In this document: positions 14,203 to 54,670 of the stretch, in pieces
Layout of the letters: each line of letters starts with the position of its first letter
How positions within the stretch are numbered: position 1 is the stretch's first letter
Source: Diplonema japonicum
Taxonomy: Eukaryota; Protista; Euglenozoa: Diplonemea
Assembly: GCA_964019335.1 (NCBI GenBank)
Contig: OZ025678.1
Span: 124,001-188,000 of the forward strand
Direction: 5' to 3'
DNA: 64,000 nt
Made by a program: the position numbers and the translations under genes
The notes under the pieces: model-generated
The model's database searches: none
What the model was told of the DNA's origin: nothing
The model's input: only the letters and a program-made list of their open reading frames with translations

Positions 14203-15026
14203 ATGAACACTCTCCGTAGTGCCAGCCGCATTGCCAGGTCCACCGGTTTCGACCTCATGCAGGTGAGGACGAAGGTGGCCTCCGCGAAGAAGGCCGCCCC
14301 CAAGAAGGTGGTGAAGAAGGTGAAGGCCGCCCCCAAGAAGGTGGTTGCCAAAAAAGATGTGAACGAAGTCAAGGCGGCCGCTCTCGAGAAGAAGAGGACC
14401 GCAATTGCCAAGAAGGTCGCGGCCGCCACTATGAGGGCTGCTGCTCGAGAGAAAAGGACTGCTCTTGCCAAGAGGAAGGCCGCCGTCAGGGCCGCCGCTC
14501 AGAAGAAGAAGGCCGCCGCCAAGGCCACCGCCGCGAAGAAGAAGGCGAGAGAGCAGGCCGCCAAGACCGGGGTGCAGGCCAGGAAGAACGCTGTATGCAC
14601 AAAAGGAGAAAAGAATACGTATTTACATCCAACACACAGGTGAAGGCAAAGAAGGCAAAGATCGCTTCCTCTGGCCCCGTGTCGGCGAGGACTCTGTTCG
14701 TCAAGCAGCAGGCTGGGAAGGGAATGTCCTTCAAGCAGGTGAACGAGAAGTTCAACACTCTTGGTGCCTCTGAGAAGCAGGCCCTTGTGAACCAGGCCCA
14801 GAAGAACCTTGCAAAGAGGACCGAGATCAGGAAGAGCCTGAAGAAGGTATGTTATCTTTGGCAGTCATCACAACTTACAACTTAACAGCCGGCCACCAAG
14901 TACGCCCTCTTTGTGAAGAAGAACTTCGCCACCGCCTACGAGTCTGCCAAGAAGCAGACCAGCGACAAGAAGGTGGCCTTCAAGCTGGCGGTCCAGACCC
15001 TGGCTGCGCAGTACAAGAAGCAGTAA
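14203..15026 (+). CDS. KAP-like mitochondrial H1-like/HMG-box protein, copy 1; introns 14593-14639 and 14847-14888
   Basis: Presequence ending ...MQVRTK, K/A-rich exon 1 (130 codons), exon 2 GPVSARTLFVKQQ...FNTLGASEKQAL, exon 3 PATKYALFVKKNF...LAAQYKKQ. Confidence 0.85.
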
Positions 15027-15212
15027 TAGTAGAGGATACAACTCCCTAGCGAACGAGACAGTTCCTTCCCTTCCAACTACACCCCCTTTCTAGAACGTTT
15101 AGATAATAAGGCATTGTAAGTTATACGTTTTACCCTGTTATCCCACCTTTCTACTCCCCACACAGAGAACCTTAACTCTTTTATATAAAAAAATCCCCCC
15201 CAAAAAACTAAA

Positions 15213-16086
15213 ATGAACACTCTCCGTATTGCCAGCCGCACCCTGAGGGCCTTCGCGCCTCTTGCCAGGTCCACCGGGTTCGACCTCATGCAGGTGAGGA
15301 CGAAGGTGACCTCCGCGAAGAAGGCCGCCCCCAAGAAGGTGGTGAAGAAGGTGAAGGCCGCCCCCAAGAAGGTGGCGAAGAAGACCTCAAAGAAGGTAGT
15401 AGTTAAGAAGGTTGCGAAGCAGGTCAAGGCGGCCGCTCTATCGAAGAAGAGGATCACTCTTGCCAAGAAGAAGGCTGCTGCTCAGAAGAAGAGGGTAGCT
15501 GTCATGAAAAGGAACGCCGCCGTCAAGGCCACCGCCGCGAGGAAGAAGGCCACTCTTGCCAAGAGGAAGGCCGCCGTCAAGGCCGTCAACGAGAGGAAGC
15601 GGGCAAGGGTGCAGGCCACCAAGGCCAAGGTGCAGGCCAAGAAGGACGCTGTATGCACAAGTAAAAAAAAGGGGGTAAATACATTTGTATCCAACACAGG
15701 TGAAGGCGAAGAAGGCAAAGATCGCTTCCTCTGGCCCCGTGTCGGCGAGGACTCTGTTCGTCAAGCAGCAGGCTGGCAAGGGAATGAACCTCAAGCAGAT
15801 GAGCGAGAAGTTCAACACTCTTGGTGCCTCTGAGAAGCAGGCCCTTGTGAACCAGGCCCAGAAGAACCTTGCAAAGAGGAACGAGATCAGGAAGAGCCTG
15901 AAGAAGGTATGTTATCTTTGGCAGTCATCACAACTTACAACTTAACAGCCGGCCACCAAGTACGCCCTCTTTGTGAAGAAGAACTTCGCCACCGCCTACG
16001 AGTCTGCCAAGAAGCAGACCAGCGACAAGAAGGCGGCCTTCAAGCTGGCGACCAGGACCGTGGTCGCACAGTACAAGAAGCAGTAA
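15213..16086 (+). CDS. KAP-like protein copy 2; introns 15651-15699 and 15907-15948
   Basis: Same three-exon structure; exon 1 has 146 codons. Confidence 0.85.
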
Positions 16087-16550
16087 AATCTTTAAATAGT
16101 TCTGAAGCAGCTCGAGTTTGTGTGAAGCAAAGTAAGAGGCGTGGAGCTAAAGAGTCCCCTCCTTTGCTTTGAGCTGCTCTTAAAACGATTATGTAGTCCC
16201 TTCCTAAAAAACTCCTCTTTTCTTTGAACTTCTTTTTGTGGTGGAGTGTGCCAACACTTCTCCTTCCGGCTAAATATTCTTTAATACTCCTCGCGCGCTA
16301 ATCCCCCTTGTAGGTCGTTACTACGATGGTGTTTTTTTTCTTCTTCTTTTTTCCCTCGCTTTTTTTTTTTTTGAAGTATATATTGTGTTTGGGAACACTT
16401 TTTTGTAATCTCCCCTTCCCCCTCCCTCTCTTTTTTTCCCTTCTTGCAGTGCCTTCAAATGCACCTGCTAAAACGTTTCATAAATTTTAAAAATTTTCCC
16501 CCTTTCGTACTAAAGAACCATATATCCCAAGTTCGCATTGAGAATCTAAA

Positions 16551-17242
16551 ATGACTACTCTCCGTATTGCCACCCGCACCCTGAGGGCCGCCGGGTTCAA
16601 CCTTATGCAGGTGAGGACGAAGGTGACTTCCGTAAATGCGGATACGGAAAATCAAAAAACTGTTGGTAAGAAGAATGCCGACAAAAGAGAGCCCGCAACA
16701 CAGAAGAGTAAAGCACAGTTTGCAAAAAGGGCTGCCCTGATCAAGCAAAGCTTGGCCGACAAGTCCGAAAATACCTCAGAAAATATAAAAAAGATTAAGC
16801 AGGTATGAACGCAAAGAAAAAAAAAAAGAAAAATAAAACAGGCGAATAAGGCCAAGGAAAAGAAAGCAAAGCTCGCTTCCTCTGGCCCCGTGTCGGCGAG
16901 GGCTCTGTTCGTCAAGCAGCAGGCTGGCAAGGGAATGAACCTCAAGCAGATGAGCGAGAAGTTCGACACTCTTGGTGCCTCTGAGAAGCAGGCCCTTGTG
17001 AACCAGGCCCAGGAGAACCTTGCAAAGAGGAACGAGATCAGGAAGAGCCTGAAGAAGGTATGTTATCTTGGCAGTCATCACAACTTACAACTTAACAGCC
17101 GGCCACCAAGTACACCCTCTTTGTGAAGGAGAACTTCGCTGCTGCCCACGAGGCTGCCAAGAAGCAGACCAGCGACAAAAAGGTGGCCTTCAAGCTGGCG
17201 GCCCAGGCCCTGGCCGCCCAGTACAAGGCTTCTAAGAAGTAA
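16551..17242 (+). CDS. KAP-like protein copy 3 (short, less basic variant); introns 16803-16841 and 17058-17098
   Basis: Exon 1 has only 84 codons and includes acidic residues. Variant exon 3 ENFAAAHEAAK...AQYKASKK. Confidence 0.8.
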
Positions 17243-17444
17243 AATAGGAGAGAAAGAAGTTTGTTTTCGACACGGCCTTAGATGTCTATATTTAAACCAT
17301 TATTTTACCGACGTTCACATTTTTTTTTTTGACCTTCTACGACTAAAAGGCGTGAGACACTTGTGTAAATTTTGCCTGATATCTCGATTTATTTTTCTTC
17401 GAGAACCTTCGCTTTTTGGGAGAAAAAAATTCCTCCCCCGGAAA

Positions 17445-17994
17445 ATGAACACTCTCTGTATTGCCAGGCGCAGCACTAGGACGAAGGTGACCTCGTCAAG
17501 ACTGTGAACAAGGCTCAGAAGGACGTCACTGTAAAGGTTATTTCTGCCAAACGAGTGATTGCCTTCGAGAACAAGAAGGTCGCCATCAAGCTTTCCACCG
17601 AATAGAAAACGGTTACTCTCGCGAAAAATGTCCCCACTGCCGAGGCCACCATACCGAAGAACGGAATTGTTGTGCGAGTTGTCGCCAGGGCTAAGGCGAA
17701 AACCATAAGGACAACGGAACAATCCAAGAAGAACGCTGTTCGCTTCCTCTTGTTCCGTAACGCTAAGGGCCCTGTTCTTAAAGCAGCAAATTGCCTTCAA
17801 TGTCCTTCCTTAGTACCTCTGGAGAAGCAGGCCCTTGTGAACCAATCCCAGAAGACAACTGAAGCAGTCATCACAACTTACAACTTAACAGCCGGCCACC
17901 AAGTACGCCCTCTTTGTGAAGAAGAACTTCGCCACTGCCTGTCAGCTTTCAAGCTGGCGACCCCAACCCTAACGCCACGTACAAGGAGCAGTAA
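17445..17994 (+). pseudogene. Degenerate KAP-like copy 4
   Basis: Recognisable start ATGAACACTCTC, GAGAAGCAGGCCCTTGTGAACCA and the intron-2 3' end, but with frameshifts, deletions and a lost intron-2 donor. Confidence 0.85.
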
Positions 17995-18345
17995 AGGAAA
18001 GAGCAGTAAATGGAAGAGAAGGAGGTGATGGAGACAACGGATTATTGTATTCTTTTGGGGTTGTTTACATGCCCCCGTTCCCTCGCCAGTTCTTGACTCA
18101 ACAGCGACCACAAGAACAATGGTAGGCGATGAAGGAAGTAGACCGTTACACATCTCTTAGCAACGTGGTCTGCAAGTCCTCACTTCACTGAAATCCCTTA
18201 AACCGTTTGGTGTGGTGGAGGTTTCTTATTTTTTATCTGGTGCTTTCGTGTTATCGCTACCCCTTTTGCGCCTTGTTCAACATGCTTCTTACTCCCTACA
18301 CAGACCACCTTAACTCTTTTACTTAAAAAAAATATTCACTCTGAA

Positions 18346-21042
18346 ATGAACACTCTCCGTGTTGCCAGCCGCACCCTGAGGGCCTTCGCACCCCTTGCCA
18401 GGTCCACCGGTTTCGACCTCATGCAGGTGAGGACGAAGGTGACCTCCGCGAAGAAGGCCGCCCCCAAGAAGGTGGTGAAGAAGGTGAAGGCCGCCCCCAA
18501 GAAGGTGGCGAAGAAGGCTGTGAAGAAGGTGGTGAATAAGACCGCAAAGAAGGTGGTTGCCAAGAAGGTGAAGAAGGTTGTTAAGAAGGTGGTTGCCAAG
18601 AAGGCAAAGGTCGCGAAGAAGGTGTCCGCTGCCGCCAAGAAGAGGGTCGTGGCCGCCAAGAGGAAGGCCATCGCCAAGGCAGCTATCCAGAAGAGGAGGG
18701 CTCTTATCCTGAGGAAGAAGGCCGCTGCCCTGAAGAAGAGGCTCACCGCCCAGAAGAGGAAGGCTCTTGCCAAGGTCGCCGCCGCGAAGAAGAGGGCCAC
18801 TCTTACGAAGGCTGCCGCAAAAGCTAAGGTGCAGGCCAAGAAGGACGCTGTATGCACAAAAAAGGATTAACCCATAAAGGACCGCTATTTTTCGACTAAA
18901 AAGTCGATTTTGAACTTTTCGTTCAAATACCAAAATAAAATGGCGAGGGTGGAGTTAGAGGGTGTGTACCTATATTATTTTCACTACCCCTGGAGCGTGA
19001 AGCGGCCTGCATGTCAGCCCCAGACGCGCCCAAACTTTGGTGGTAGAGCATTTGAGAGAAACAACTCTTGCAAAGGGCACATGCTATCCAGAGGTTCCAT
19101 GGTTTCGGCAAGCAGCGCTTATACAGCGTGCGGGTGGGCTGGTTATTTTTTTTCCACCACTTATGGCCGTTCTTTGAACACAAGGTCCGAGGTGCCGCAG
19201 ATATGCGACTTGTCCAATTTAAACGTATTTCTATTTTCAAGAGGTTCTCAGGTGGTTTTTTAAGGTGTCGTTAATGTGAAAAAATTCGAAACAGGGCACA
19301 GGGCACGTTGCTACGTTGCAATCTCTGCACGAGAACATGGCCTGGGTGCGTTTTTTCTCTAATTTGTTGCACACAGTGCAATTCCGTGCCTTTTGCATCT
19401 TTTCAGGACACGTTAAAGGTGCACCCTTGGCACGTGAAGGTGCACCCTGAGGGGTAGGTATCTTAGGCTCCGGCGGGGAACACTTGATGTGGGTACCACC
19501 CTTTTGCGATGATGTTGTTTGACAAGATTTCTTTGCCACACACTTGCTGACACTGAATGGTATTCTGGGAGCAATTTCCGGGTTTCCTGATGGTCCCCAT
19601 GCAGCGGAAATCCGCATTGTAAATCCGTATCAACAATGGGACAAGCGAAAGCAGTTGTCAAAGACAATCCAGTAATTCTGGTGCTGATATTCGGTGAGCA
19701 GCTCTGCCTCTTTCCCCCGGGTGCCCGCGCCGGTACAAACAATCATGTTTAGAGTGTAACCGGTGTCTGATTTGCATTTTGAACCCATAACGCTTCCTCT
19801 TCTTCGGCTCACAAACAATGAACCCGACACGGCTTCTACAGCGTATGATGGTTCATCCACAGCAAGGTTTCGCTTGGGTACATACAGGGATGACCAAGAA
19901 GGAATCACAAGATTTATAAGATTGCGCCCGTTAGCCATTCTGTCTCCTTCTCCTCCACCAGGGGGCAACCCAAACCGCTTAGCGCATTATTTATAGGAGC
20001 CTGTTTCTTTCCATTACCGTACTGAAATATTGTGAATATGGGGTATCTGTGAGTTCATCCTGTGCCCAGTAGACCTTGATATCTGTCTTGATTATGAGCC
20101 CTGTAAGTATCCAAAGGCCTCTATACCACTCGAATGGCTTGCTGCCCACCCCACGATAGCCTTTTAGAGCCGCAGGAGTGAAAAACAACTCAAAGTACAG
20201 GACAAACCCCCTGCTGGAGGGCCGCCCTATCAAAAACAAAGGAAAAACCTCCAGCCCGTTGAGGCCCACTACTGGTACACTTGGACCTGGCACCTTGCGA
20301 AATATTTTCCTCCCCACCTTGATTTTGTCATCCCATTCCATATCCGGGATATCCCCATCATCCGGTGACACTGACCCTTCTTCAGAAGTACTTTCGGCAC
20401 TACTCCTTATGGGGTGTAAAAAAAACAATGTCTGTGCCACTATTTTTTTTCTCCCCTTGCAGTTTGGATGCAAAAATTTACGGGCGATTTAGCATTCAGT
20501 ATAAAAAAAGTCGCGCAATAAGGCCCCTCTTTAAAGAGTGGGCGTGCAGAGCACTAAAAATGCCTTAGCAGAATTTAAAAAAAAAAATTTAGCTGAATAT
20601 TCAGCTCCGGTCCTTTATGGGTTAAAAAAAAACGCATTTTTACATCCAACACACAGGTGAAGGCAAAGAAGGCAAAGATCGCTTCCTCTGGCCCCGTGTC
20701 GGCGAGGACTCTGTTCGTCAAGCAGCAGGCTGGGAAGGGAATGTCCTTCAAGCAGGTGAACGAGAAGTTCAACACTCTTGGTGCCTCTGAGAAGCAGGCC
20801 CTTGTGAACCAGGCCCAGAAGAACCTTGCAAAGAGGAACGAGATCAGGAAGAGCCTGAAGAAGGTATGTTATCTTGGCAGTCATCACAACTTACAACTTA
20901 ACAGCCGGCCACCAAGTACGCCCTCTTTGTGAAGAAGAACTTCGCCACCGCCTACGAGTCTGCCAAGAAGCAGACCAGCGACAAGAAGGTGGCCTTCAAG
21001 CTGGCGGTCCAGACCCTGGCTGCGCAGTACAAGAAGCAGTAA
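18346..21042 (+). CDS. KAP-like copy 5 with piggyBac insertion in intron 1; exons 18346-18849, 20657-20863, 20905-21042
   Basis: All exons are intact. Intron 1 (18850-20656) is interrupted at its TTAA by a piggyBac element. Confidence 0.75.
18871..20621 (-). mobile_element. piggyBac-like DNA transposon (degenerate transposase)
   Basis: TTAA TSDs at 18867-18870 and 20622-20625; 14-bp TIR CCCATAAAGGACCG. Minus-strand fragments RNLAVDE and IVFDNCF, plus C-terminal Cys-rich CTVC...CRDCNVATCPVPCFEFFH. Confidence 0.93.
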
Positions 21043-21228
21043 TAGTAGAGGATACAACTCCCTAGCGAACGAGACAGTTCCTTCCCTTCCAACTACACCC
21101 CCTTTCTAGAACGTTTAGATAATAAGGCATTGTAAGTTATACGTTTTACCCTGTTATCCCACCTTTCTACTCCCCACACAGAGAACCTTAACTCTTTTAT
21201 ATAAAAAAATCCCCCCCAAAAAACTAAA

Positions 21229-22347
21229 ATGAACACTCTCCGTATTGCCAGCCGCACCCTGAGGGCCTTCGCGCCTCTTGCCAGGTCCACCGGTTTCGAC
21301 CTCATGCAGGTGAGGACGAAGGTGACCTCCGCGAAGAAGGCCGCCCCCAAGAAGGTGGTGAAGAAGGTGAAGGCCGCCCCCAAGAAGGTGGCGAAGAAGG
21401 CTGTGAAGAAGGTGGTGAAGAAGACAGCAAAGAAGGTGGTTGCCAAGAAGGTGAAGAAGGTTGTTAAGAAGGTGGTTGCCAAGAAGGCAAAGGTCGCGAA
21501 GAAGGTGTCCGCTGCCGCCAAGAAGAGGGTTGCTGCCGCCAAGAAGAGGGATGTCGCTGCCAAGAAGAAGGCCATCGTCCAGAAGAAGAAGATCGCCGCC
21601 CTGAAGAAGAAGGCCGCCAAGGCCGCCCTCATTAAGAGGAGGGCCGCTGTCCTGAGGAAGAAGACCGCTGCCAAGGCAGCCATCCTGAAGAAGAAGGCTC
21701 TTATCCAGAAGAAGAGGGCCGTCGCCAAGGCAGCCATCCTGAAGAAGAAGATCGCCGCCCAGAAGAAGAAGGCCGCCGCCCAGAAGAAGAGGGCCGCCGC
21801 CAAGGCAGCCATCCTGAAGAAGAAAGCCACCGCCAAAGCCAAAGTGCAGGCCGCCAAGGCCAAGGTGCAGGCCGCAAAAGCCAAGGTGCAGGCCAAGAAG
21901 GACGCTGTATGCACAAAAAAGGGGTTTAAAAAAAAAACGCATTTTTACATCCAACACACAGGTGAAGGCGAAGAAGGCAAAGATCGCTTCCTCTGGCCCC
22001 GTGTCGGCGAGGACTCTGTTCATGAAGCAGCAGGCTGGGAAGGGAATGTCCTTCAAGCAGGTGAACGAGAAGTACAACACTCTTGGTGCCTCTGAGAAGC
22101 AGGCCCTTGTGAACCAGGCCCAGGAGAACCTTGCAAAGAGGAACGAGATCAGGAAGAGCCTGAAGAAGGTATGTTATCTTGGCAGTCATCACAACTTACA
22201 ACTTAACAGCCGGCCACCAAGTACACCCTCTTTGTGAAGAAGAACTTCGCCACCGCCTACGAGTCTGCCAAGAAGCAGACCAACGACAAGAAGGTGGCCT
22301 TCAAGCTGGCGACCAGGACCGTGGCCGCCCAGTACAAGAAGCAGTAA
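21229..22347 (+). CDS. KAP-like protein copy 6; introns 21907-21961 and 22169-22209
   Basis: Same structure; exon 1 has 226 codons with repeated AKAAILKKK units. Confidence 0.85.
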
Positions 22348-22461
22348 TAGTAGAGGATACAACTCCCTAGCGAACGAGACAGTTCCTTCCCTTCCAACTA
22401 CACCCCCTTTCTAGAACGTTTAGATAATAAGGCATTACACTGTTATCCCACCTTTCTACTA

Positions 22462-23139
22462 ACCAAGGCCGCCCTCATTAAGAGGAGGGCCGCTGTCCTG
22501 AGGAAGAAGACCGCTGCCAAGGCAGCCATCCTGAAGAAGGAGGTCGCTGCCCAGAAGAAGAGGGCCGCCGCCAAGGCAGCCATCCTGAAGAAGAAGGACG
22601 CTGCCCTGAAGAAGAAGGCCTCCGCCCTGAAGAAGAAGGCCGCCGCCAAGGCCAAGGTGCAGGCCGCAAAAGCCAAGGTGCAGGCCAAGAAGGACGCTGT
22701 ATGCACAAAAAAGGGGTTTAAAAAAAAACGCATTTTTACATCCAACACACAGGTGAAGGCAAAGAAGGCAAAGATCGCTTCCTCTGGCCCCGTGTCGGCG
22801 AGGACTCTGTTCCTCAAGCAGCAGGCTGGCAAGGGAATGAACCTCAAGCAGATGAGCGAGAAGTTCAACACTCTTGGTGCCTCTGAGAAGCAGGCCCTTG
22901 TGAACCAGGCCCAGAAGAACCTTGCAAAGAGGAACGAGATCAGGAAGAGCCTGAAGAAGGTATGTTATCTTTGGCAGTCATCACAACTTACAACTTAACA
23001 GCCGGCCACCAAGTACGCCCTCTTTGTGAAGAAGAACTTCGCCACCGCCTACGAGTCTGCCAAGAAGCAGACCAACGACAAGAAGGCGGCCTTCAAGCTG
23101 GCGGTCCAGACCCTGGCCGCCCAGTACAAAAAGCAGTAA
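22462..23139 (+). pseudogene. 5'-truncated KAP-like copy 7
   Basis: The intergenic spacer (…CACCTTTCTACT) is joined directly to mid exon 1, so the ATG and presequence are deleted. Exons 2 and 3 are intact. Confidence 0.8.
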
Positions 23140-23303
23140 AGAGTGATTTCAAATAATTAGAGTTAATAAGAGTTATAAACGAAAGAAGAGCTCAAAGTTT
23201 GTAAATAGAGGCGAAGTGAGGCGATGGAGCTGAGGAGTCCCCCTCCTTTGCTTTGAGCTGCATTTAAGTAAACGAAACTCTTTTTTTATTTTATTTTATT
23301 TTT

Positions 23304-26300
23304 GAACACGACGCAAGAGACGTGGACTGGTCACATTCAGTGCTGGAGCACCCTACGTTGCGCTGCCCAGACGGAGAAGGGTATTGTGCCGAGAACAACT
23401 ACCTGACGACCTCACCAACACGTCCCTTGGAAAAAGCGATTATTTTCTTGATTTTTTTTTATTGTTGTTTTAGCAAGCTCCTGCTAGCTGTTTTGCTATA
23501 TTTTCTTCTTCTTCTTTTTTTTTTTTTTTTTTTTCTTCTTCTTTCCCCCCCCACGCTGCACACTTAACGGCAAATAGTGTTGCGACCAAAGCCCCATTTT
23601 TTTTTTGACTTTTACTCTTTTATTTGTTTTATTCGTTTCTTTGTTTCTTTTTTTATTATTATTTATTATTAGTCTATCAATCATTGACCTCCTAACCTTT
23701 TCGGCCACACCACGCCCCTTTGCCCCTCTCTCCTGCGACTGGTTCGGCTCCCCGACCGAAAACAATCATCTGATCTACTCGTTGGCAATAATCCACCTCC
23801 CGCGGGCACATTTCCTCATTATGAAAAGGTCGAAGCGGTCCATTGCGCGAGAAGCGAGGAAACGGCTCATGACACACGGTGACGTCCACCCCAATCCGGG
23901 GCCCGAGAAGGGGAAGAAGGAAATCACTATTATCTCTGTGAACGTGACGAACCTCCCAAATCAGCTGAACAGGGTCAAACTACAGGAGTTTGACGTGATT
24001 TGCCTGCAAGAGACCGCCCTTACGCAAGCGGGGCAATGGATGATGGACAAGGAAGCGAAGCAAGACGTTTTCCTAAAAGAACACCGTCTCTTTTGGGGAC
24101 CCCCACAACAAGGGAAGGTGTCAAAAGGTGCAGAATCCCCCTCAATCGCCCAAAGAGGAGGCGTGGGAATTATGGTGAACAAGCAACTGACAGCTAAGAA
24201 GGAATCCTCCCTTTTCGAGGACCACAACACCAACTCGCGAAGGGTACATGTAAGAGTCGCGATTGGGAAACGTGACTGGTTACACATTATCACCCTCTAC
24301 TGCCAGGTAAGCGACGGCTCCAGACACGCCAAGAGAAATAGGGAGGCGCTAATATCCGACACCCTACAGAGATCGGCTCAGCTGGGGGACGTTCCGGTCA
24401 TTGTGACAGGAGACTTCAACACGACGATAATGGACTCCCCGGTCCTCTCGCACGCCCTCTCTCAACATTGGACAGACGCTTCGAACAAAATATCGCGCCT
24501 ACATGGAACACAAGCCCCTCCTACCTTCGTAACTGCAACAGCGAAGACGAGGCCAGACTACATCTTGGTGAACAAGACAGCAGCGATGGCGCTGACCGAC
24601 TGCCAGACTCTGGACATTGGCGTACCCTCACACCGCGCACTAGTAATTAGAATCGATATGCCGAGATTCTACGAGCCCTCACTCCAGTACAGTATACCCA
24701 AGAAGATCATCCCTCTCCATGACTCCCGGAACCGCGCTCCGTACAGCGACATTCTCCCTACTTTGAGATCCCTGAAAGACAACGGGGACCTGGATGCAGC
24801 TTTCTTAGAGCTTTCTTCTGCTTGCGAGAAACACCTTTTGAGTGGAACGGCGCAGCTGGAGAATTCGATCTACTCTGGCAGAGGCGTGATTAATACCCCC
24901 AGCATGCGGAGGACGGCGGCTCCGTCTACGATGACAGCATTTGGGGCAGTCTCTAAAAAGTACCTAACACTTGAGAAAATCCGGCAGAGTGCAGCCGCTA
25001 TTGTGCGGAGAGTCCCACTGTTGAAAGACCCGGCCCTGCCGTATGACCTACGCAAGAGCTGGGACAATATTAAGGCAAAGGCAATTAAGATCCTACGGTT
25101 CCACCCGGAAACCTTCTCCGAGGGTAACATCGTCAAGGAAGCAGACCTGATTCGGGAGAACGTTACGGCACGACAACGGAACATGGACATCGCTTCGAAG
25201 ATCCTGCGCAACGTGAAGGCACGGAGGGATCTGAACTCGGGTTTCTCGGTGAACCGGAGCGCGATTATGCAATTTGTGACGGACAAGCCAAATAGAGAGC
25301 TAGTTGCAGCAAACACGAACGGTACCCTCTCGACCTCAGTCGAAGAGATAGACCAAGCCTTCAGGTCGGCATGGCGCCACATCTTCCGCAAATACGAGGA
25401 CCACCCTGAGCCGAGTTTTGATTCTTTTGAGGAAACTTTTGGGTCGCAGATCACCCACCACCCCATGGTCGACCTCGCGATCACGCTAGAAGACCTGCGA
25501 AGAGTGCTGAGTAAGAAGGAGAAACAGGAATGCGCTGGGATCGATGGATGGAGGCTCTGCGAACGCCCACTTACCAGATGCCCTGCTAGAGGGATTCATC
25601 TTCCTATACAACTGGATTGAGGATGAGGGACGATGGCCAAAGGCAGTCCTGACCGCGCTTGTTACGATGATCCCGAAAGGAGAATCCGAAGAGCCGCTAG
25701 ATCACAGACCTATTACTGTATCGAGCGCATTCTATCGGCTCTGGGCTGGCGCACGACTACCAGCCATCCTCGAATGGCAAGAGGAGTGGATTACTCCGCT
25801 CCAATTCGGCTTCAGACCGGAACACAGCACAGATGACCTCCTCGCGAAGGTCTGCACCAGTGTGGAGTTGGCAAAAGTATCTGGCAACCACCTTTGGGGT
25901 CTCTCGGTCGACTTCAAGAAATGCTTTGACTCTGTCCCCCACGCACTCACGTTCGAACTGGTCGATCGGTTAGGCCTAAGCCAGCTCATCCTGAGACCGA
26001 TCAAGGCCATCTACTCTGACCTAATCCGCCGCCTACGTTTCCCCGTGGGAGTAGGTGCTCCATTCCGAACCACGAATGGAATACTCCAGGGATGCCCGAT
26101 CTCGCCCGTTTTCATCAACGCAATCCTTGCCATCTTCACCAAGAAATGTACGGCAAATCCAAGAAACGCACACCCAGTGTCATATGCAGACGACCTTAAC
26201 TTCACGTCAATTACCTCGGAGGCCGCGGTTCAGCGTTCCGTAAATCTACTAGGCAGCCTTTGCAAGCTCACGGGGATGACCGTACACCCGAAGAAGACCA

Positions 26301-28041: not shown

Positions 28042-28069
<28 letters not shown>
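23304..28069 (+). mobile_element. Non-LTR retrotransposon (APE endonuclease + RT + Cys/His finger), single ORF with one frameshift
   Basis: APE motifs SVNV, CLQET, GDFN, TRPDYIL and SH. RT motifs RPITV, QFGFR, DFKKCFDSV, GILQGCPISP and YADD. Finger CLGCG...HTIWQCPAH. The 3' end is a T26 run; the 5' boundary is approximate. Confidence 0.93.
23821..27988 (+). pseudogene. LINE polyprotein (2A-like, APE, RT, Zn finger), frameshifted near 25564
   Basis: GIDGWRLCE in one frame continues as AHLPDALLEGF in another; otherwise the ORF is open. Confidence 0.85.
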
Positions 28070-28074
<5 letters not shown>

Positions 28075-30376: not shown

Positions 30377-30380
30377 CCAC

Positions 30381-40810: not shown

Positions 40811-40863
<53 letters not shown>

Positions 40864-43111: not shown

Positions 43112-43259
43112 TTTCCCCCCCCCCCCCTTAATATTGCCCCGCTTCCGTCACATGAAAGAAAAAAAAAGGGGGGGGAGAGGGTTTTTTTTTTCTTCTTTTT
43201 TTTTTTTGGCCGTTGCTAACCACTCATTCCTATCATAGTGAATTTTTTTTTTTTGCTAA

Positions 43260-44318: not shown

Positions 44319-44463
44319 GGGGGTTTTGTTGTCACAGAACCTCATTTTTTTTATTTAAAAAAAAAATAATAGGTTCTTGTTGTGTTTTTTTTTTTTTTTT
44401 TTTTTTTTCTCCCCGTCGCCGCAAAAAAAAAAATAAAAAATAAAATAAAAAGGGGGTAGGGGA

Positions 44464-45404: not shown

Positions 45405-45724
45405 CCCCCTTTTTTTATTTTCTGGTCGGGTGGTGGGGGAAGCTACAGCTAGGCCGAGGTGCGCCCCCTGTAATCAAGTAGATGGTGCTTGAGCAGGGCG
45501 CCCCCACCAGCTTCCATTAAATCATCGAGTTTTCTTTTCTTTTTCCTCTTTTCTTGGCTTTTGGAGCTACTCTCTTTTTGGAGCACGTAACTTTCTTTCG
45601 AGGATACCAACGTTCATACTATCTTTGTTGTTTTACTCACAACGATCGCCCTCACCCTTCATTGTTATTATTCTCTCGCCACCATACCCCCATCTCACAC
45701 ACGTAACGAGACTCAAAACCTAAA

Positions 45725-46808
45725 ATGAACACTCTACGTATTGCCAGCCGCACCCTGAGGGCCTTCGCGCCTCTTGCCAGGTCCACCGGTTTCGACCTCA
45801 TGCAGGTGAGGACGAAGGTGACCTCCGCGAAGAAGGCCGCCCCCAAGAAGGTGGTGAAGAAGGTGAAGGCCGCCCCCAAGAAGGTGGCGAAGAAGGCTGT
45901 GAAGAAGGTGGTGAAGAAGACAGCAAAGAAGGTGGTTGCCAAGAAGGTGAAGAAGGTTGTTAAGAAGGTGGTTGCCAAGAAGGCAAAGGTCGCGAAGAAG
46001 GTGTCCGCTGCCGCCAAGAAGAGGGTCGCTGCCGCCAAGAAGAGGGATGTCGCTGCCAAGAAGAAGGCCATCGTCCAGAAGAAGAAGATCGCCGCCCTGA
46101 AGAAGAAGGCCACCGCCAAGGCCGCCCTCATTAAGAGGAGGGCCGCTGTCCTGAGGAAGAAGACCGCTGCCAAGGCAGCCATCCTGAAGAAGAAGGCTCT
46201 TATCCAGAAGAAGAGGGCCGTCGCCAAGGCAGCCATCCTGAAGAAGAAGATCGCCGCCCAGAAGAAGAGGGCCGCCGCCAAGGCAGCCATCCAGAAGAAG
46301 AAGGCCGCCGCCAAAGCCAAGGTGCAGGCCGCCAAGGCCAAGGTGCAGGCCAAGAAGGACGCTGTATGCACAAAAAAGGGGTTTAAAAAAAAAAAAACGC
46401 ATTATTGCATCCAACACACAGGTGAAGGCAAAGAAGGCAAAGATCGCTTCCTCTGGCCCCGTGTCGGCGAGGACTCTGTTCCTCAAGCAGCAGGCTGGGA
46501 AGGGAATGTCCTTCAAGCAGGTGAACGAGAAGTTCAACACTCTTGGTGCCTCTGAGAAGCAGGCCCTTGTGAACCAGGCCCAGAAGAACCTTGCAAAGAG
46601 GAACGAGATCAGGAAGAGCCTGAAGAAGGTATGTTATCTTTGGCAGTCATCACAACTTACAACTTAACAGCCGGCCACCAAGTACGCCCTCTTTGTGAAG
46701 AAGAACTTCGCCACCGCCTACGAGTCTGCCAAGAAGCAGACCAGCGACAAGAAGGTGGCCTTCAAGCTGGCGGTCCAGACCCTGGCTGCGCAGTACAAGA
46801 AGCAGTAA
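45725..46808 (+). CDS. KAP-like protein copy 9; introns 46364-46421 and 46629-46670
   Basis: Same structure; exon 1 has 213 codons. Confidence 0.85.
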
Positions 46809-46994
46809 TAGTAGAGGATACAACTCCCTAGCGAACGAGACAGTTCCTTCCCTTCCAACTACACCCCCTTTCTAGAACGTTTAGATAATAAGGCATTGTA
46901 AGTTATACGTTTTACCCTGTTATCCCACCTTTCTACTCCCCACACAGAGAACCTTAACTCTTTTATATAAAAAAATCCCCCCCAAAAAACTAAA

Positions 46995-49583
46995 ATGAAC
47001 ACTCTCCGTATTGCCAGCCGCACCCTGAGGGCCTTCGCGCCTCTTGCCAGGTCCACCGGGTTCGACCTCATGCAGGTGAGGACGAAGGTGACCTCCGCGA
47101 AGAAGGCCGCCCCCAAGAAGGTGGTGAAGAAGGTGAAGGCCGCCCCCAAGAAGGTGGCGAAGAAGGCTGTGAAGAAGGTGGTGAAGAAGACAGCAAAGAA
47201 GGTGGTTGCCAAGAAGGTGAAGAAGGTTGTTAAGAAGGTGGTTGCCAAGAAGGCAAAGGTCGCGAAGAAGGTGTCCGCTGCCGCCAAGAAGAGGGTCGCT
47301 GCCGCCAAGAAGAGGGATGTCGCTGCCAAGAAGAAGGCCATCGTCCAGAAGAAGAAGATCGCCGCCCAGAAGAAGAAGGCCACCGCCAAGGCTGCCCTCA
47401 TTAAGAGGAGGGCCGCTGTCCTGAGGAAGAAGACCGCTGCCAAGGCAGCCATCCTGAAGAAGAAGGCTCTTATCCAGAAGAAGAGGGCCGTCGCCAAGGC
47501 AGCCATCCTGAAGAAGAAGATCGCCGCCCAGAAGAAGAGGGCCGCCGCCAAGGCAGCCATCCTGAAGAAGAAGACCGCCGCCCAGAAGAAGAGGGCCGCC
47601 GCCAAGGCAGCCATCCTGAAGAAGAAGACCGCCGCCCAGAAGGAGAGGGCCGCCGTCCAGAAGAAGAAGGCCGCCGCCAAGGCCAAGAAGGACGCTGTAT
47701 GCACAAAAAAGGGGATTAAAAAAAAAAAAACGCGTGCTGTAAAACGAATAATGTCGGACGGAAAAATTCTCGGACGGAAAAACTCCCGGACACCAAAAAC
47801 TCCCGGACATTTTTCCGTCCGGGAGTTTTTCTGGGAAGAAGTTTTTTTACTTAAGGGGGGGTAGCAGCTCCCACCACGTTTGCCTGGAAGGGCTTTATTC
47901 CTTGTGCAGAGACAAAATGTTTACCCTGCGTGGCAGGTTGAATTTTTCTTCCCCTTTTAATGCACCAACAAACAGCACCCACGGGATCTTTAACGTCTCA
48001 TAAACCCGTACTTCTTTCGTCAAATTAACCAGTTCGACTACCCAAGGCACGTTGAGCAGCTGGCTTGTGAGGGGCCCAACTTTGGTGCTGGCACCCCGGC
48101 CAGCTCACCCCGAGAGGTGGAGGAGATAAACTTACACCGGGCCGAGAAGGCCAGTACAAACCCCCGAAAGCAGCTTGGCGGGAACAGGTTCAACAGAGCC
48201 CCCAGTTTCTTCCAGACGGAAATACTGGACGTTGCTATTCCACCCTACCACACCCTGGCCGCCTCGACGCCGTGATAGCAGCGTATCGCCCAATACGGGA
48301 TTTGGCATCCTTCGGGGGCTGAAAGGTTTTTGCTTGAGTCGATAGGTAAAACGGGCTTGGCGAGCCTATCCCAGCACAACAAATATGCACCTATGCAGAA
48401 GGGCTGCTGCGCGCCAATCCAGCCCGAAAGACAGACCTGTATGGGGTTAAAAACTAAAACGAAAAGGGGTGCTAAGGTCGTAAGAGTCCGTGGCTTGGGG
48501 GACAAAACGGGCTATAACTGAACAGCTGGCTGTTTCCTTGGCTGGATGGGGTTGCACCGCAACTTAAATACAAAGGCAAAGCGGAAACGCAACATTGTAT
48601 ATCCGTGCCCCGGTCAAGCACCCGCCCATCGAACGGAGCCTAACAGCATCGCCCAATCATTGGGCTAATTATGATACTCGGTATCTGGGTTACGGAGCTG
48701 TTTCTTCCTTTTGCTATAAATCATCGATTCCCATGGTTTTGCCGAATTCTGCTGCTTGTCGGCGACTACACCTCTCATACGACCTATGCCTATGGGTTCG
48801 TAGAGTTGTTCGCAGGCGCAACGTGCACATTGTTTTTGTCCCCCTGGGCTCACCTACATGGTTCAACCGATGGATATTGGGTTGAACGCAGCTGTAAAGC
48901 ATCTATTAAGAAAGGTAGTTGGCCACACGAAGGCTCGACAAGCTGATTGCCTCAGGGGCAGCAAGGGAAGACAAAGATGCAGAAAGGGAACCCTGGGGGG
49001 TTTCTTCGCGCGGTTGCCGTTTGCAGCCCAGGCCAGTATGTAGGTGGTAGTGGACCAGGCCCCCTGACGGCCTTACCTAAAAAAAATTCCCGGACGGAAA
49101 AACTTCCGGACGGAAAAATTCCCGGACGCTAAAAAAACTCGGACATTTTTCCGTCCGGGAGTTTTTCGTTTTACAGTATTTACATCCAACACACAGGTGA
49201 AGGCGAAGAAGGCAAAGATCGCTTCCTCTGGCCCCGTGAGGCCGAGGGCTCTGTTCGTTAGCCAGCAGGCTGGCAAGGGAATGAACCTCAAGCAGATGAG
49301 CGAGAAGTTCAACACTCTTGGTGCCTCTGAGAAGCAGGCCCTTGTGAACCAGGCCCAGAAGAACCTTGCAAAGAGGAACGAGATCAGGAAGAGCCTGAAG
49401 AAGGTATGTTATCTTTGGCAGTCATCACAACTTACAACTTAACAGCCGGCCACCAAGTACGCCCTCTTTGTGAAGAAGAACTTCGCCACCGCCTACGAGT
49501 CTGCCAAGAAGCAGACCAACGACAAGAAGGCGGCCTTCAAGCTGGCGACCAGGACCCTGGCCGCCCAGTACAAGAAGCAGTAA
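46995..49583 (+). CDS. KAP-like copy 10 with pogo-like insertion in intron 1; exons 46995-47696, 49197-49403, 49446-49583
   Basis: Exons are intact. Intron 1 (47697-49196) contains a TIR element. Confidence 0.75.
47737..49176 (+). mobile_element. pogo/Tigger-like DNA transposon remnant
   Basis: TIR CTGTAAAACGAA/TTCGTTTTACAG with a TA flank on the right and TG on the left; subterminal CCGGAC repeats. Fragments KTKTKRGAKVVRVRGLGDK and VQPMDIGLNAAVK. Confidence 0.88.
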
Positions 49584-49975
49584 AATGCTTGATCTAGAGG
49601 AGACTTCAATTAATTAACAGTAAATTACTTCAAAATAGTTTAGAGGTTACAGCTCGTGTTTGTGTGAAGCGAAGTGAGGCGATGGAGCTAAAGAGTCCCC
49701 CTCCTTTGCTTTGAGCTGTTCTTAAAACGATTATTTCCCTCGATTCACAATCTTTTGTATAGGTTTCGTACCGCCCCCCTCTGCTTTTCTTTCGATTTCT
49801 TTTTGTTTCCCTCCCTCTCTCGGCCCTAGCGGACGAGACAGTTTCTTCCCTTCCAACACCCCCTTTCTAGAACCCTTTAGTTAGCAAACCATTTTACATT
49901 TTGCCCCGTAAACCTACTCTTCACAGAGAGAAAGTTAACTTTCAAAAAGAACTCCCCCCCCCCAAAAAAACTAAA

Positions 49976-50713
49976 ATGAACACTCTCCGTATTGCCAGCC
50001 GCACCCTGAGGGCCTTCACGCCTCTTGCCAGGTCCACCGGTTTCGACTTCATGCAGGTGAGGACGAAGGTAACCTCCGAGATGGGTGTGGACGAGGAACA
50101 AGTAGTGAAAAAGACAGCCACTCTTGCCAGCAAGAAGGCCACCCTTGCTAACACAAGGGCAGCTCTGAACAAGAATGGGAGTAGCGAAGAGGAGCGGATC
50201 GAAAAGAAGCGGGATACCAAGGCAAATGCCTTGAAAGAGGCTGTGTGCACAAAAAATAATAGTAATAATATAATAACAACAACATAAACCACACAGGTGA
50301 AGGAGAGGAGGGCAAAGAATGCTTCGGAAAAGAAAGCAAAGATCGCTTCCTCTGGCCCCGTGTCGGCGAAGACTCTGTTCATCAAGCAGCAGGCTGGCAA
50401 GGGAATGTCCCTCAAGCAGATGAGCGAGAAGTTCAACACTCTTGGTGCCTCTGAGAAGCAGGCCCTTGTGAACCAGGCCCAGGAGAACCTTGCAAAGAGG
50501 AACGAGATCAGGAAGAGCCTGAAGAAGGTATGTTATCTTTGGCAGTCATCACAACTTACAACTTAACAGCCGGCCACCAAGTACGCCCTCTTTGTGAAGA
50601 AGAACTTCGCTGCTGCCCACGAGGCTGCCAAGAGGGAGACTGACGACAAAAAGGAGGCCTTTAAGCTCGCGACCAAGGCCCTGGCCGCCAAATACAAGGC
50701 TTCTCAGAAGTAG
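49976..50713 (+). CDS. KAP-like copy 11 (short acidic variant); introns 50243-50296 and 50528-50569
   Basis: Exon 1 has 89 codons with DEEQ/SEEE. Exon 3 is of the copy-3 type (AAAHEAAK...YKASQK). Confidence 0.8.
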
Positions 50714-50791
50714 GCAAACATATCAGTAGTAGGTAAACAACATCTTCTTTGCTTTGAGCTGCATAATTTTGGCTTATCAAAAAACGAAATA

Positions 50792-52942
50792 CTGTAAAAC
50801 AAAAATCCACCGGAAGATAAAATATCCGGACCGCCGAAACATCCGGTGATTTTTTCTTCCGGACATTTTTTTGGGGCACTTTTCAAGGGGGCACCTAGCC
50901 TGCCCTACGCACTGTCCCCTCCCCCTGTCTGCTGCATGTTTCCCTGGAAAAACTTATGTTTGTGTTGCAAGAGTCTTAAAAATGGCAAAAATAAAACTAA
51001 AAAAAGGGGGTGAGGAACGTCCTACCTGTCCGTCTTTGCCTTTGGCAGTGCGCTTGTCCGTCTTGTTTGCTGCTTTCGCAGCCTTGGCAGAGCACTTGGC
51101 CTCGGCCTCAGCAAGTCTTTGCTGGGTCAAGGGGGGGGAGCATTTCTACTGAAGAAAAAGAAGAAGAAACGGAAAACGAAGTTTCGTCCACCCAAGAAGC
51201 GGCGGAAACCGTACTTGTGTCAGATGACACGACAATCGTGTCATCCAACACTTCTCTGGCCCCTTCCAGCTGCCTAGCAAGCTTGGCATATTGCTGGTCT
51301 TCCCACTCTTCCCACTCTTCATCTCCGCAGCACGTCGCTGCAACGGCAAGCACACCACAGTATGCTGCTGCAATGAGAGAATTCTCCCAGCAGGACTCCA
51401 CCAAGGCTCTAAAAAACGCCCGAAACAATGGGCCCAGCTTGCCTGCTGACATGCTCCCAGGCTGCTTCAACCCACCTGGCAGAAAAAAGAGGGAAAGTTG
51501 AATTATCTTAGTTTACTTTTAAAAAAATACCTCAGATGTGGTCCTTTTATCTCACTTGTACTTGGTACCGTCCACCCTTCCTGACGGTTCCCTTCTTCCA
51601 CATACTTGTCCAGCCTCCTCATAGACCACTTTTTATACTTGGGGAGCTGTTAAACTCCAGCCTTTTGGGGTGTGCAACACGAGGGACGGACCCGGGGTAT
51701 TTCCTGCAGCGGGCTGGTTCTGTTCTTCCCGTGTAAATTAACTGCGGATGCAGTTTGCCACCAGACAGGGAAACGCAAAACTGTCCGGTGACGGCACGCT
51801 TGTCCCCCAAGCCCCTAACCTTGACAACCTTGGAACCCCTTTTAGTCTTCGTCTTCTTCCCCAGCGGCAGCAGGGGAAGCGCCGTCTGGTCCATGTTCCA
51901 GGTCAACTCTGGCCTGATCCCATGTTCTTTGATGGTCCTTCCGACGTACTCTGCGAACCTCCTCGCTGCTTGGGTGTCATTGAGGCTGCTAGACTTCCCT
52001 GTTGTTGGGCGGCGGCTTGTCATGCCATGCTTGGAGCACAGCTGGTTGGCCCAGGCTTGGGAGAAAGACACCGTTCCCCCAAACGCCTCGAGGTTCTCCT
52101 TCCGCAGCGGGTTGCAGCGCAGGAGACCCTCTGCATACAGGCAGATGTCCAACGCTGCTACCGGCACCCCCCTTCCGTTCTGCACCTGGATCCAAGCAAA
52201 GAGCTTGGTTGTTTCTTCCTCGTTCAGAAGAGGCTTGCGACCCGCAGTAACGGGTGCGGCAGGGGGATCGACCTTGGAGCTACCAAAGCGGTGTTTCCAG
52301 TCTGATATACTGGACGTTGGCACCGTGATGTCTTCCTTCGCGCGGTACCAGCGCTGGGCCGCCGTGGTACCATAGGTGGCTGCGTAGCGGCCTATTTTGG
52401 CCTTTTCAGCCTCAGCAAGCTTGAGCTTCGCAGGAGGCTTTCTTGCTTTCTTGGCGGCGTGCAAGGTGTTGATCTCTTGCACTTCCCTGGGGGTAAGATG
52501 GCCGGAGTTGCCAGCATCCAAAAAGGTACGCTTGCCAACCCAGTTAGTCGAAGTGCCCTGTTGCATTTTTGAAAAAGTTAATGAAGAGTAAGTTTAATGA
52601 AAGATTAAGCGTCTGGAATGTGTTTAGGGGCTAGGAAAATGAGAAATAAAAAGCACAAGAACAACCCTAAAGCAATCACAAGGGGTGGTTCGGTTCGACA
52701 AGTTTGTGGTAGAAGCGAACAATCAGGATCTGAGGTATCTTTTAGTTCTTGGAAAAGTCCGTAATTCAATTCTCTCTGATTTTCGTTTGATTTTTCTCTT
52801 GCTACAGAAACTAGTTTCATCCGTTTTCGGGTCCAGCCCTTAAAAGAAAAGGGGGTCCCGGGAAAGAAATGTCCGGAAGAAAAAATATCCGGACCGCCAG
52901 AGCTTCCGGACATTTTATCTTCCGGTGATTTTTGTTTTACAG
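50792..52942 (-). mobile_element. pogo-like DNA transposon (Brinker + CENP-B HTH + internally deleted DDE)
   Basis: TA TSDs and TIR CTGTAAAACAAAAATC.ACCGGAAGATAAAAT. ORF 52566-51619 contains KIGRYAATYGTTAAQRW, FSQAWANQLCSKHG and WNMDQT. C-terminal GPHLR|WVEAAW is restored across intron 51530-51476. Confidence 0.92.
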
Positions 52943-52960
52943 TATATCATCTGTTCAACT

Positions 52961-53012
<52 letters not shown>

Positions 53013-53404
53013 AAACAGAGTGGAATTTTCGTTGCGGCTCTGTGGCGACCTATTGCATATATTGCATATTAGCCCGTGCGCGTTCGGACCTCAGCATTAA
53101 AGCACGAGAGGATGTGCATCGAAGGGCCCCTTAGCCACAGCTTGACCTGCGGCTAGTTTATTTTAGAAACAAGATTTTTGTCCACTCTCCCATCAGTTCT
53201 CTCGCTTTCCGACCGACAACGCCTCCCCTCTAGAATGTTAAGATACTGATGTATGACATTATTCATTATACTTTTTACTCTGTTGTTATTCAGATAATAA
53301 GGCACTATAAGTTATACGTTTTGCCCTGTTATCCCACCTTTCTACTCCCCACAGAGAACCTTAACTCTTATTAAAAAAAAAAAAAAAAAACCTCAAAACC
53401 TAAA

Positions 53405-54670
53405 ATGAACACTCTCCGTATTGCCAGCCGCACCCTGAGGGCCTTCGCGCCTCTTGCCAGGTCCACCGGTTTCGACCTCATGCAGGTGAGGACGAAGGTG
53501 ACCTCCGCGAAGAAGGCCGCCCCCAAGAAGGTGGTGAAGAAGGTGAAGGCCGCCCCCAAGAAGGTGGCGAAGAAGGCTGTGAAGAAGGTGGTGAATAAGA
53601 CCGCAAAGAAGGTGGTTGCCAAGAAGGTGAAGAAGGTTGTTAAGAAGGTGGTTGCCAAGAAGGCAAAGGTCGCGAAGAAGGTGTCCGCTGCCGCCAAGAA
53701 GAGGGTCGCTGCCGCCAAGAAGAGGGTCGCTGCCGCCAAGAAGAGGGATGTCGCTGCCAAGAAGAAGGTCGCCGCCAAGGCTGCTGTAGCCAAGAAGAGG
53801 GCAGCTGTCATTAAGAGGAAGGCCGCCGTCAAGGCCCTCGCCCTGAAGAAGAGGGCCGCCGCCCAGGCCAAGAAGGCAAAGGACGCGGCAGCTCTTGCCA
53901 AGAAGAAGATCGTTGCTCAGAAGCAGAAGGCCACTCTTGCGAAGAAGAAGATTGCCGCCAAGGCTGCTGCCGTGAAGAAGAGGGCCACTCTTGCCAAGAA
54001 GAAGGCCGCCGCCCAGAAGAAGAAGGCCGCCGCCAAGGCCAGCCTCATGAAGAAGAAAGCCGCCCTTAAGAAGAGCTCCGCTGCCCTCAAGAAGAAGAAG
54101 GCCACCGCCGCGAAGAAGAAGGCCGCTGCTGCTGCCAAGGCCGCCGCTCTGAAGAAGAAGGCCAAGGCCAAGGTGCAGGCCGCAAAAGCCAAGGCGCAGG
54201 CCGCCAAGGCCAAGGTGCAGGCCAAGAAGGACGTTGTATGCATATATTTATATAAAAAGGGAGGGGTTTACATAATCACACAGGTGAAGGCGAAGAAGGC
54301 AAAGATCGCTTCCTCTGGCCCCGTGTCGGCGAGGGCTCTGTTCGTTAGCCAGCAGGCTGGCAAGGGAATGTCCCTCAAGCAGATGAGCGAGAAGTTCAAC
54401 ACTCTTGGTGCCTCTGAGAAGCAGGCCCTTGTGAACCAGGCCCAGAAGAACCTTGCAAAGAGGAACGAGATCAGGAAGAGCCTGAAGAAGGTATGTTATC
54501 TTTGGCAGTCATCACAACTTACAACTTAACAGCCGGCCACCAAGTACGCCCTCTTTGTGAAGATGAACTTCGCCACCGCCTACGAGTCTGCCAAGAAGCA
54601 GACCAACGACAAGAAGGCGGCCTTCAAGCTGGCGACCAGGACCCTGGCCGCCCAGTACAAGAAGCAGTAA
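53405..54670 (+). CDS. KAP-like protein copy 12 (longest); introns 54236-54283 and 54491-54532
   Basis: Exon 1 has 277 codons; same exons 2 and 3. Confidence 0.85.

Follow-up and report, generated by a model that had tools for sequence, protein, structure and literature searches.

The window analysed here is a stretch of 64,000 nucleotides (nt) from the genome of Diplonema japonicum (contig OZ025678.1, positions 124,001 to 188,000). It contains an array of 12 copies of one gene family, whose products have a presequence-like N-terminus, a linker that in most copies is a long tail rich in Lys and Ala, and two C-terminal boxes related to the high-mobility-group (HMG) box. Six-frame searches over the whole 62.5-Mb assembly and motif scans of the window resulted in 11 matches to exon 2, 9 to the N-terminus and 12 to exon 3 (E down to 1e-36). 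All of them lie inside the window, and the six-frame searches found no piece of the family anywhere else in the 62.5-Mb genome. The published assembly of D. japonicum strain YPF1604 is of similar size, at 62.3 Mb (PMC13598402).

All 12 copies are on the plus strand and fall into two clusters, copies 1-7 at 14203-23139 and copies 8-12 at 44464-54670. Open exons separated by GT..AG mini-introns were identified by an exon check in 10 of the 12 copies (1, 2, 3, 5, 6, 8, 9, 10, 11 and 12). The other two are not intact: copy 4 has premature stops and copy 7 has lost its 5' end. A sequence-only reading of this DNA had proposed 12 copies, ten with intact exons, in two clusters, and the motif scans and six-frame searches agree with it. 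The limits that it gave, 14203 and 54670, are the first ATG and the last base of the last stop codon of the array. The copies, and one splice acceptor discussed below, are as follows.

14203-15026 (+): copy 1; exons 14203-14592, 14640-14846 and 14889-15023, then TAA; 244 amino acids (aa); shortened presequence
15213-16086 (+): copy 2; exons 15213-15650, 15700-15906 and 15949-16083; 260 aa
16551-17242 (+): copy 3; exons 16551-16802, 16842-17057 and 17099-17239; 203 aa; short linker, not Lys/Ala-rich
17445-17990 (+): copy 4, a pseudogene; ATG at 17445, TGA at 17505 after 20 codons; box 1 degenerate, box 2 frameshifted
18346-21042 (+): copy 5; exons 18346-18849, 20657-20863 and 20905-21039; intron 1 of 1807 nt
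21229-22347 (+): copy 6, the reference model; exon 1 21229-21906 (presequence and tail), exon 2 21962-22168, exon 3 22210-22344, then TAA; 340 aa
22443-23139 (+): copy 7, a 5'-truncated relic; exon 2 22753-22959, exon 3 23002-23136
44464-45404 (+): copy 8, a divergent paralogue; exon 1 44464-44976, exon 2 about 45046-45225, exon 3 45261-45401
45725-46808 (+): copy 9; exons 45725-46363, 46422-46628 and 46671-46805
46946-46947 (+): AG acceptor at which copy 10 receives its spliced leader by trans-splicing; the resulting 5' untranslated region has 47 nt
46995-49583 (+): copy 10; exons 46995-47696, 49197-49403 and 49446-49580; intron 1 of 1500 nt
49976-50713 (+): copy 11; exons 49976-50242 (GTGTGC donor), 50297-50527 and 50570-50710; 213 aa; short mixed linker
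53405-54670 (+): copy 12; exons 53405-54235, 54284-54490 and 54533-54667; 391 aa; tail longer than in any other copy; 57% Lys+Ala

In copy 6, intron 1 is 55 nt long (GTATGC...CAG) and intron 2 is 41 nt; exon 2 encodes 69 aa and exon 3 encodes 45 aa. In copy 7, the upstream spacer is joined straight to the middle of the tail, and the AG acceptor, the ATG, the presequence and the first ~130 codons are missing. Copy 8 stands apart from the rest of the array: its box 1 has only 52% identity.

Transcription of the family is confirmed by a transcript-derived protein and by RNA-type contigs, and so are the division into three exons, the mini-introns and the addition of a spliced leader. The protein, called P0001 below (EukProt EP01064_Diplonema_japonicum_P020513), is a complete open reading frame (ORF) from a Trinity transcript. 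Its junctions ...KKDA/VKAKK... and ...SLKK/PATKY... (slash at the joint) coincide exactly with the predicted exon joints. P0001 is identical to copy 2 over exon 1 (146/146 residues), which confirms D. japonicum as the source and bears out the link to diplonemids made from the sequence alone. Exon 3 matches copy 2 at only 42 of 45 positions and copy 10 at all 45. P0001 therefore looks like a fusion of paralogues made during assembly (exon 1 from copy 2, exons 2-3 from a copy 10-like gene), or like a strain variant.

Four public sequencing runs were compared over 44400-50390; three are DNA-like and one (X21) is RNA-like. The comparison used Logan contigs, in which near-identical paralogues are inseparable and from which expression level is not measurable. 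Run X21 contains both GT..AG joints of copy 9 (46363>46422 and 46628>46671) and the intron 2 joint of copy 8 (45225>45261). It also joins exon 2 of copy 10 (49197) to an exon-1 donor that could belong to either copy 9 or copy 10. A loose contig end, TTCTGTACTTTATT, stops just before 46947 in the same run, and we take it to be the 3' end of the diplonemid spliced leader. Directly next to this end, 47 nt ahead of the copy 10 ATG, stands an AG preceded by a pyrimidine tract, and the sequence upstream of copies 2 and 6 is identical to this acceptor region. The earlier expectation that transcripts exist thus held, both for P0001 and for the contigs of run X21.

Copy 8 is less clear. Its putative intron 1 (44977-45045) is retained in the sole RNA-type contig that covers the copy, and the same contig splices intron 2. 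Three in-frame acceptors are possible for this intron (45016, 45034 and 45046). Should splicing never remove it, the ORF would end at 44980, ahead of the HMG box.

Codon usage in the family is extreme. AAG makes up 96% of Lys codons in the family vs 48% in five neighbouring genes, CAG usage is 98% vs 53%, and AGG usage is 82% vs 25%. The GC content at third codon positions (GC3) is 0.83 in the family and 0.58 in the neighbouring genes; copy 8, at 0.51, is unbiased. This fits an abundant structural protein, and the description of the family as amplified and strongly codon-biased is upheld.

The closest known relatives are in other diplonemids. A profile of exon 2 with 11 rows was searched against 1.84 billion representative proteins, and the window exons were also searched singly. 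The profile matched only 18 proteins. Those that are named family members belong to D. papillatum, D. ambulator and Flectonema, and other matches to ENA assemblies and marine metagenomes; a member from Rhynchopus was found in a later search with a family profile. The D. papillatum protein DIPPA_15346 (P0013, KAJ9448554.1) was matched with an E-value of 5.7e-6, and its boxes align column for column with those of the window.

A 21-member "mitochondrial Ala,Lys-rich HMG box" family of D. papillatum was published in December 2025 (BMC Genomics; PMC12699882). Ala and Lys make up >60% of the residues in that family, and three-quarters of the members have a C-terminal HMG motif. Its authors proposed a role in the replication or maintenance of multipartite mitochondrial DNA (mtDNA) and reported comparable family numbers across diplonemids, from a data set that included the D. 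japonicum transcriptome (PMC12699882). Judged by sequence homology, the window array is the D. japonicum part of this family and is already known. Since it is homologous to the published family and leads to the same published functional hypothesis, the array is a rediscovery.

The D. papillatum proteins share with the window an MNTLR.../...MQVR-type start, the Ala/Lys tail, box 1, and a box 2 that ends in ...KYK(S)SQ. They too are encoded by a multigene family, which includes a short tail-less member (DIPPA_32963; compare copies 3 and 11) and a divergent mixed-charge member (DIPPA_17178; compare copy 8). The two species differ in family size (21 members vs 12, all of the latter in one 40-kb locus) and in Lys+Ala content, which is >60% in D. 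papillatum and 43-57% of the precursor in D. japonicum. The introns also differ: in D. japonicum they flank box 1, whereas the D. papillatum gene models suggest an intron inside box 1. Three D. papillatum proteins described as "linker histone H1/H5, no HMG" (DIPPA_11093, 11158 and 11161; PMC12699882) stop inside box 1 at ...KWK or ...KYK, followed by VC.... This ending corresponds to read-through of a GTATG mini-intron (compare SLKK/VCYLW... in the window). The three are therefore probably unspliced gene models and not truly HMG-less.

The N-terminus ends in MQVRTK in nine of the ten intact copies, with copy 8 as the exception, in agreement with the earlier description of an Arg/Ser/Thr-rich N-terminus that closes in QVRTK in all but that copy (motif scans). 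The first 31 residues have a net charge of +5 and one acidic residue, and Ser and Thr together account for 8 of the first 34. An amphipathic stretch, LRIASRTLRAF, has a helical hydrophobic moment of 0.87, which is exceeded by 4% of shuffles. In the family alignment the motif Q-[VMT]-R before the basic region is kept across species, and the N-terminal leader of ATP-synthase subunit p18 in D. papillatum also closes in an MQVR-type ending. The D. japonicum N-termini align with the N-termini of orthologues that score high in six targeting predictors. For the D. papillatum orthologues the published scores are 0.92-0.99 in MitoFates, 0.55-0.99 in TargetP2 and 1.0 in MitoProtII, and they are high in DeepLoc2 (PMC12699882). 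Three of them (DIPPA_32963, 15346 and 11126) carry the flag "proteomics", which means detection in sub-organellar separations or enrichment in crude mitochondrial fractions (PMC12699882). The P. papillatum subcellular-proteomics paper and the supplements consulted with it do not mention the family proteins. The N-terminus is probably a matrix-targeting presequence with cleavage near Q-V-R-T-K. Mitochondrial targeting, as put forward from the sequence, fits this presequence-like N-terminus and the homologues reported as mitochondrial in D. papillatum (PMC12699882).

Both boxes are present at the motifs originally quoted (ARTLFVKQQ... for box 1 and YALFVKKNF...LAAQYKK for box 2). The evidence for box 1 comes from profiles and from a structural model. 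Among the relatives, DIPPA_15346 gives a sub-threshold match to the Pfam HMG_box model (E 0.0049). Weaker matches of the exon-2 profile, P0017 (Lacrimia), P0015 and P0010 (from a Yihiella transcriptome), have Pfam-significant HMG boxes. A phmmer search of P0001 against the PDB sequences returned noise only. A 14-row family profile searched against the same sequences resulted in 34 matches, all 34 of them HMG-box proteins. The best were HMGB1 (9.3e-6) and TFAM (4e-5), followed by PMS1, NHP6A, TOX, Gcf1p and SOX30, and the TFAM alignment covers all of box 1.

An AlphaFold2 model of P0001 based on a 25-row alignment has a predicted local distance difference test (pLDDT) score of 94-98 over the C-terminus. 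Box 1 (residues 157-216, pLDDT ~98) is modelled with three helices (162-169, 177-185 and 189-213). It superposes on TFAM box A (3tq6_A) with Z 7.2 and a root-mean-square deviation (rmsd) of 1.9 A over 59 residues, and on TFAM box B (3fgh_A) with Z 7.6 and an rmsd of 2.1 A over 60 residues. The boxes of TOX, UBF, CIC, SRY and SOX proteins also superpose on it, and Abf2p aligns over 135-260. The wide structural search was flooded by coiled coils that match the tail helix, and the HMG boxes were selected by model range. Prediction from the single sequence was uninformative (long helices; predicted template modelling score 0.28). The neighbours in the ESM Atlas are HMG-box clusters (score 0.81), which is a lead only. 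The profile and the model together identify box 1 as a true, if divergent, HMG box, and the HMG fold suggested by the sequence-only reading was recovered for this box in the model.

Between the presequence and box 1, seven of the ten intact copies have a Lys/Ala-rich tail, as had been described from the sequence. Lys and Ala make up 57-71% of the tail and 43-57% of the precursor in these seven. The linkers of copies 3 and 11 are short and mixed, and that of copy 8 has mixed charge. In the AlphaFold model of P0001 the tail is a single long helix (residues 63-155, pLDDT 87-98). The tail had been called H1-like, and this holds for its composition: AKKAAPKK-type motifs and a basic Lys/Ala/Pro content are shared with the C-terminal domain of H1. 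It does not hold for the globular domain. Pfam found no match to the linker-histone globular domain (PF00538) in the exons or in P0001, and the AlphaFold model has helices only. H1 has a winged-helix globular domain, whereas the tail in the window is predicted to be helical and is built of repeats. Membership in the linker histone H1 family was rejected for want of the winged-helix globular domain.

Box 2 is shorter than an HMG box. The AlphaFold2 model has two helices only (219-238 and 242-259), and the box ends in ...AAQYKKQ. At the point where box 2 of the family ends, P0010 continues with ...AEWKKLSDDERVAF... into helix 3, and Pfam calls that P0010 box. DIPPA_32963 is listed with two InterPro HMG-superfamily matches (PMC12699882 table). 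With moderate confidence, this comparison and the model suggest that box 2 is a truncated HMG box that lacks helix 3. Of the two TFAM/KAP4-like boxes initially proposed, the first is indeed TFAM-like; the second appears to be a two-helix truncated form, and no homology to kinetoplastid KAP proteins was detected with the exon-2 profile. P0010 (EP00933_Yihiella_yeosuensis_P065756) itself comes from a dinoflagellate transcriptome and has the same layout of box 1 followed by box 2, with the second box complete. It could be a true distant homologue or contaminating prey.

Three groups of known mitochondrial DNA-associated proteins resemble the family in part. The closest precedent in function outside the diplonemids is Glom of Physarum polycephalum (Sasaki et al. 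2003, reviewed in PMC7463775). The Lys-rich region of Glom condenses DNA by itself, and the nucleoids of the organism are very rich in DNA. Glom, compared here by description, is also mitochondrial and also has a Lys-rich N-terminal half followed by C-terminal HMG boxes; unlike the window proteins it has a proline-rich segment, two full HMG boxes and a single gene. TFAM and Abf2p likewise combine a mitochondrial presequence with a DNA-bending HMG-box module, and they are the best structural matches to box 1. Both of their boxes are complete, and a long polycationic tail is absent; the second box in the window appears to be without helix 3.

The kinetoplastid proteins KAP1-4 and KAP6 belong to the sister lineage and, like the window proteins, are nucleus-encoded, very basic and Lys/Ala-rich; they are associated with mitochondrial DNA, as is proposed for the window proteins. 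KAP6 has two HMG boxes (PMC7463775). KAPs are small and have a nine-residue presequence (PMC8080567), while the window precursors have 203-391 aa and a leader of ~30 residues. The homology to KAP3, KAP4 and KAP6 anticipated by the sequence-only reading did not materialise: there are no kinetoplastid proteins among the 18 matches of the exon-2 profile, although this profile was the only one used and a very distant kinship is possible. Membership in the KAP family was rejected on this result and on the differences in size and presequence. The relationship between the two families would therefore be one of functional analogy, or one too distant to detect.

The array has been shaped by duplication and by mobile elements. 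Intron 2 is identical, save for one T, in all 11 non-divergent copies, and the C-terminal modules of copies 1, 5 and 9 are 99.4-99.7% identical. Copies 1-2, 5-6 and 9-10 form pairs with an identical 3' flank and intergenic spacer (14889-16100, 20905-22350 and 46671-48000). These shared spacers point to duplication of a two-gene block, or to gene conversion, within and between clusters. The tails are composed of tandem repeats of 21, 33, 36 and 54 nt. The 54-nt unit is present 3.3 times in copy 6, 4.4 times in copy 9 and 5.8 times in copy 10, and the tails differ in length because the number of these units varies.

Two copies have a swollen intron 1. In copy 5 it contains a decayed piggyBac-type transposase on the minus strand (19237-20473; DDE_Tnp_1_7, E 1.5e-6; weak zf-Tnp_2). 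The insertion of this remnant explains why the intron is 1807 nt long instead of ~50 nt; the donor and acceptor were kept. In copy 10 the intron reached 1500 nt because a 1.43-kb element with terminal inverted repeats (TIR) and no ORF was inserted (47760-49190). At least 40 other full or half copies of this element, with 89-97% identity, are found on many contigs, and its depth in the DNA runs is very high. Despite the TIR element, RNA-type contigs link an exon-1 end to exon 2 of copy 10.

The two clusters are separated by ~21 kb of unrelated genes, including a long interspersed nuclear element (LINE) and genes for HECT, SET-MYND and RMND1/DUF155 proteins. Directly downstream of the truncated copy 7 lies a non-LTR (long terminal repeat) retrotransposon (23605-27988, plus strand). 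Its ORFs encode an apurinic-type endonuclease (Exo_endo_phos, E 2e-10) and a reverse transcriptase (RVT_1, E 2.9e-23), and it may mark the event that ended the first cluster (copies 1-7). The RMND1/DUF155 gene (43260-44318, plus strand; E 1.3e-39) is immediately upstream of copy 8. The RMND1/DUF155 family is known from mitochondrial translation, and its position next to copy 8 is probably a coincidence. Rfam and tRNA scans of the window returned no matches.

Taken together, the analysis favours a mitochondrial Ala,Lys-rich HMG-box family that quite probably coats and packages mtDNA. Under this reading each gene would be transcribed, given a spliced leader and freed of its two mini-introns. The amphipathic, positively charged N-terminus of ~30 residues would direct the protein to the matrix and be cleaved near Q-V-R-T-K. 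The mature protein would consist of a polycationic Ala/Lys tail of ~100-250 residues, for which a helical structure is predicted and which is made of 7-, 11-, 12- and 18-residue repeats, and a C-terminus formed by one complete HMG box and a two-helix truncated second box. It would coat, bend and charge-neutralise the very abundant circular mtDNA, with minor-groove binding and bending by the HMG box and condensation by the tail.

Several results weigh against this. No exon of the window matches HMG_box in Pfam at E<=10, and neither does P0001. A Foldseek search against the PDB gave no significant E-value (best 1.2), although HMG proteins topped the list. Box 2 alone has no PDB match and does not match box 1 by hhalign. 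The long helix modelled for the Ala/Lys tail may reflect nothing more than the low complexity of its sequence. The site of presequence cleavage is inferred, and so, for family members in any diplonemid, are DNA binding and packaging of the nucleoid.

The proteins could also be mitochondrial with a different main job, either in the replication, segregation or recombination of mtDNA circles or as RNA-binding components of the trans-splicing and editing machinery. TbKAP6, the two-HMG-box kinetoplast protein, is needed for replication of kinetoplast DNA (PMC7463775), and polycationic tails bind RNA as readily as DNA. However, the copy number, the codon bias and the apparent high transcript coverage suit a stoichiometric coating protein better, and a Lys-rich region combined with HMG boxes is the architecture of the nucleoid condenser Glom, so that such a role is considered unlikely. 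A nuclear role, in which the proteins are chromatin hybrids of an H1-like tail and an HMG box and the N-terminus is not a presequence, is very unlikely. Lys/Ala-rich tails and HMG boxes are classic modules of nuclear chromatin, and some D. papillatum members carry the InterPro label Linker histone H1/H5. Against it stand the missing H1 globular domain, the amphipathic Arg/Ser/Thr-rich N-terminus conserved before the basic region in every species, and the MQVR-type ending shared with the p18 presequence. For several orthologues, moreover, enrichment in mitochondrial fractions is on record, and the results of six predictors are concordant.

The least probable explanation is that the array consists mostly of decaying duplicates and that one or two copies are functional. 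Copies 4 and 7 are clearly dead, transposons sit in intron 1 of copies 5 and 10, and the contigs cannot separate near-identical paralogues. Yet in ten copies the exons are open, the splice sites are preserved and the codon bias is strong. RNA-type contigs join exon 2 of copy 10 to the end of an exon 1, the acceptor of copy 10 receives a spliced leader, and D. papillatum retains 21 members. Within the packaging reading, the model of the proteins allows an extension that is doubtful: the one-and-a-half HMG module and a helical polycation made of repeats, perhaps rigid and of graded length (exon 1 of 89 to 277 residues), might be a diplonemid-specific way to pack mtDNA circles. Box 2 might then be completed in trans or serve as a protein interface, while tail isoforms would set the degree of compaction, tuned by unequal crossing-over at the 54-nt repeats.

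Overall, the sequence-only picture of an amplified family of mitochondrial, basic HMG-box proteins is supported, with corrections regarding H1, the KAPs and box 2. What is added here to the published family is incremental: a complete map of the locus, the intron positions, the use of a spliced leader, the transposon-swollen introns, the repeat-driven tails, the block duplication and the truncated box 2. Among the heterotrophic protists of the sea, diplonemids rank with the most abundant, and they have exceptional amounts of fragmented, circular mtDNA. The family is an obvious candidate for packaging this DNA, one already flagged in print, and the value of the locus is practical and not conceptual. 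D. papillatum is genetically tractable. With the window, the full set of family genes is available from a second species in correctly spliced form, and an entire family located in one 40-kb locus is a convenient target for deletion.

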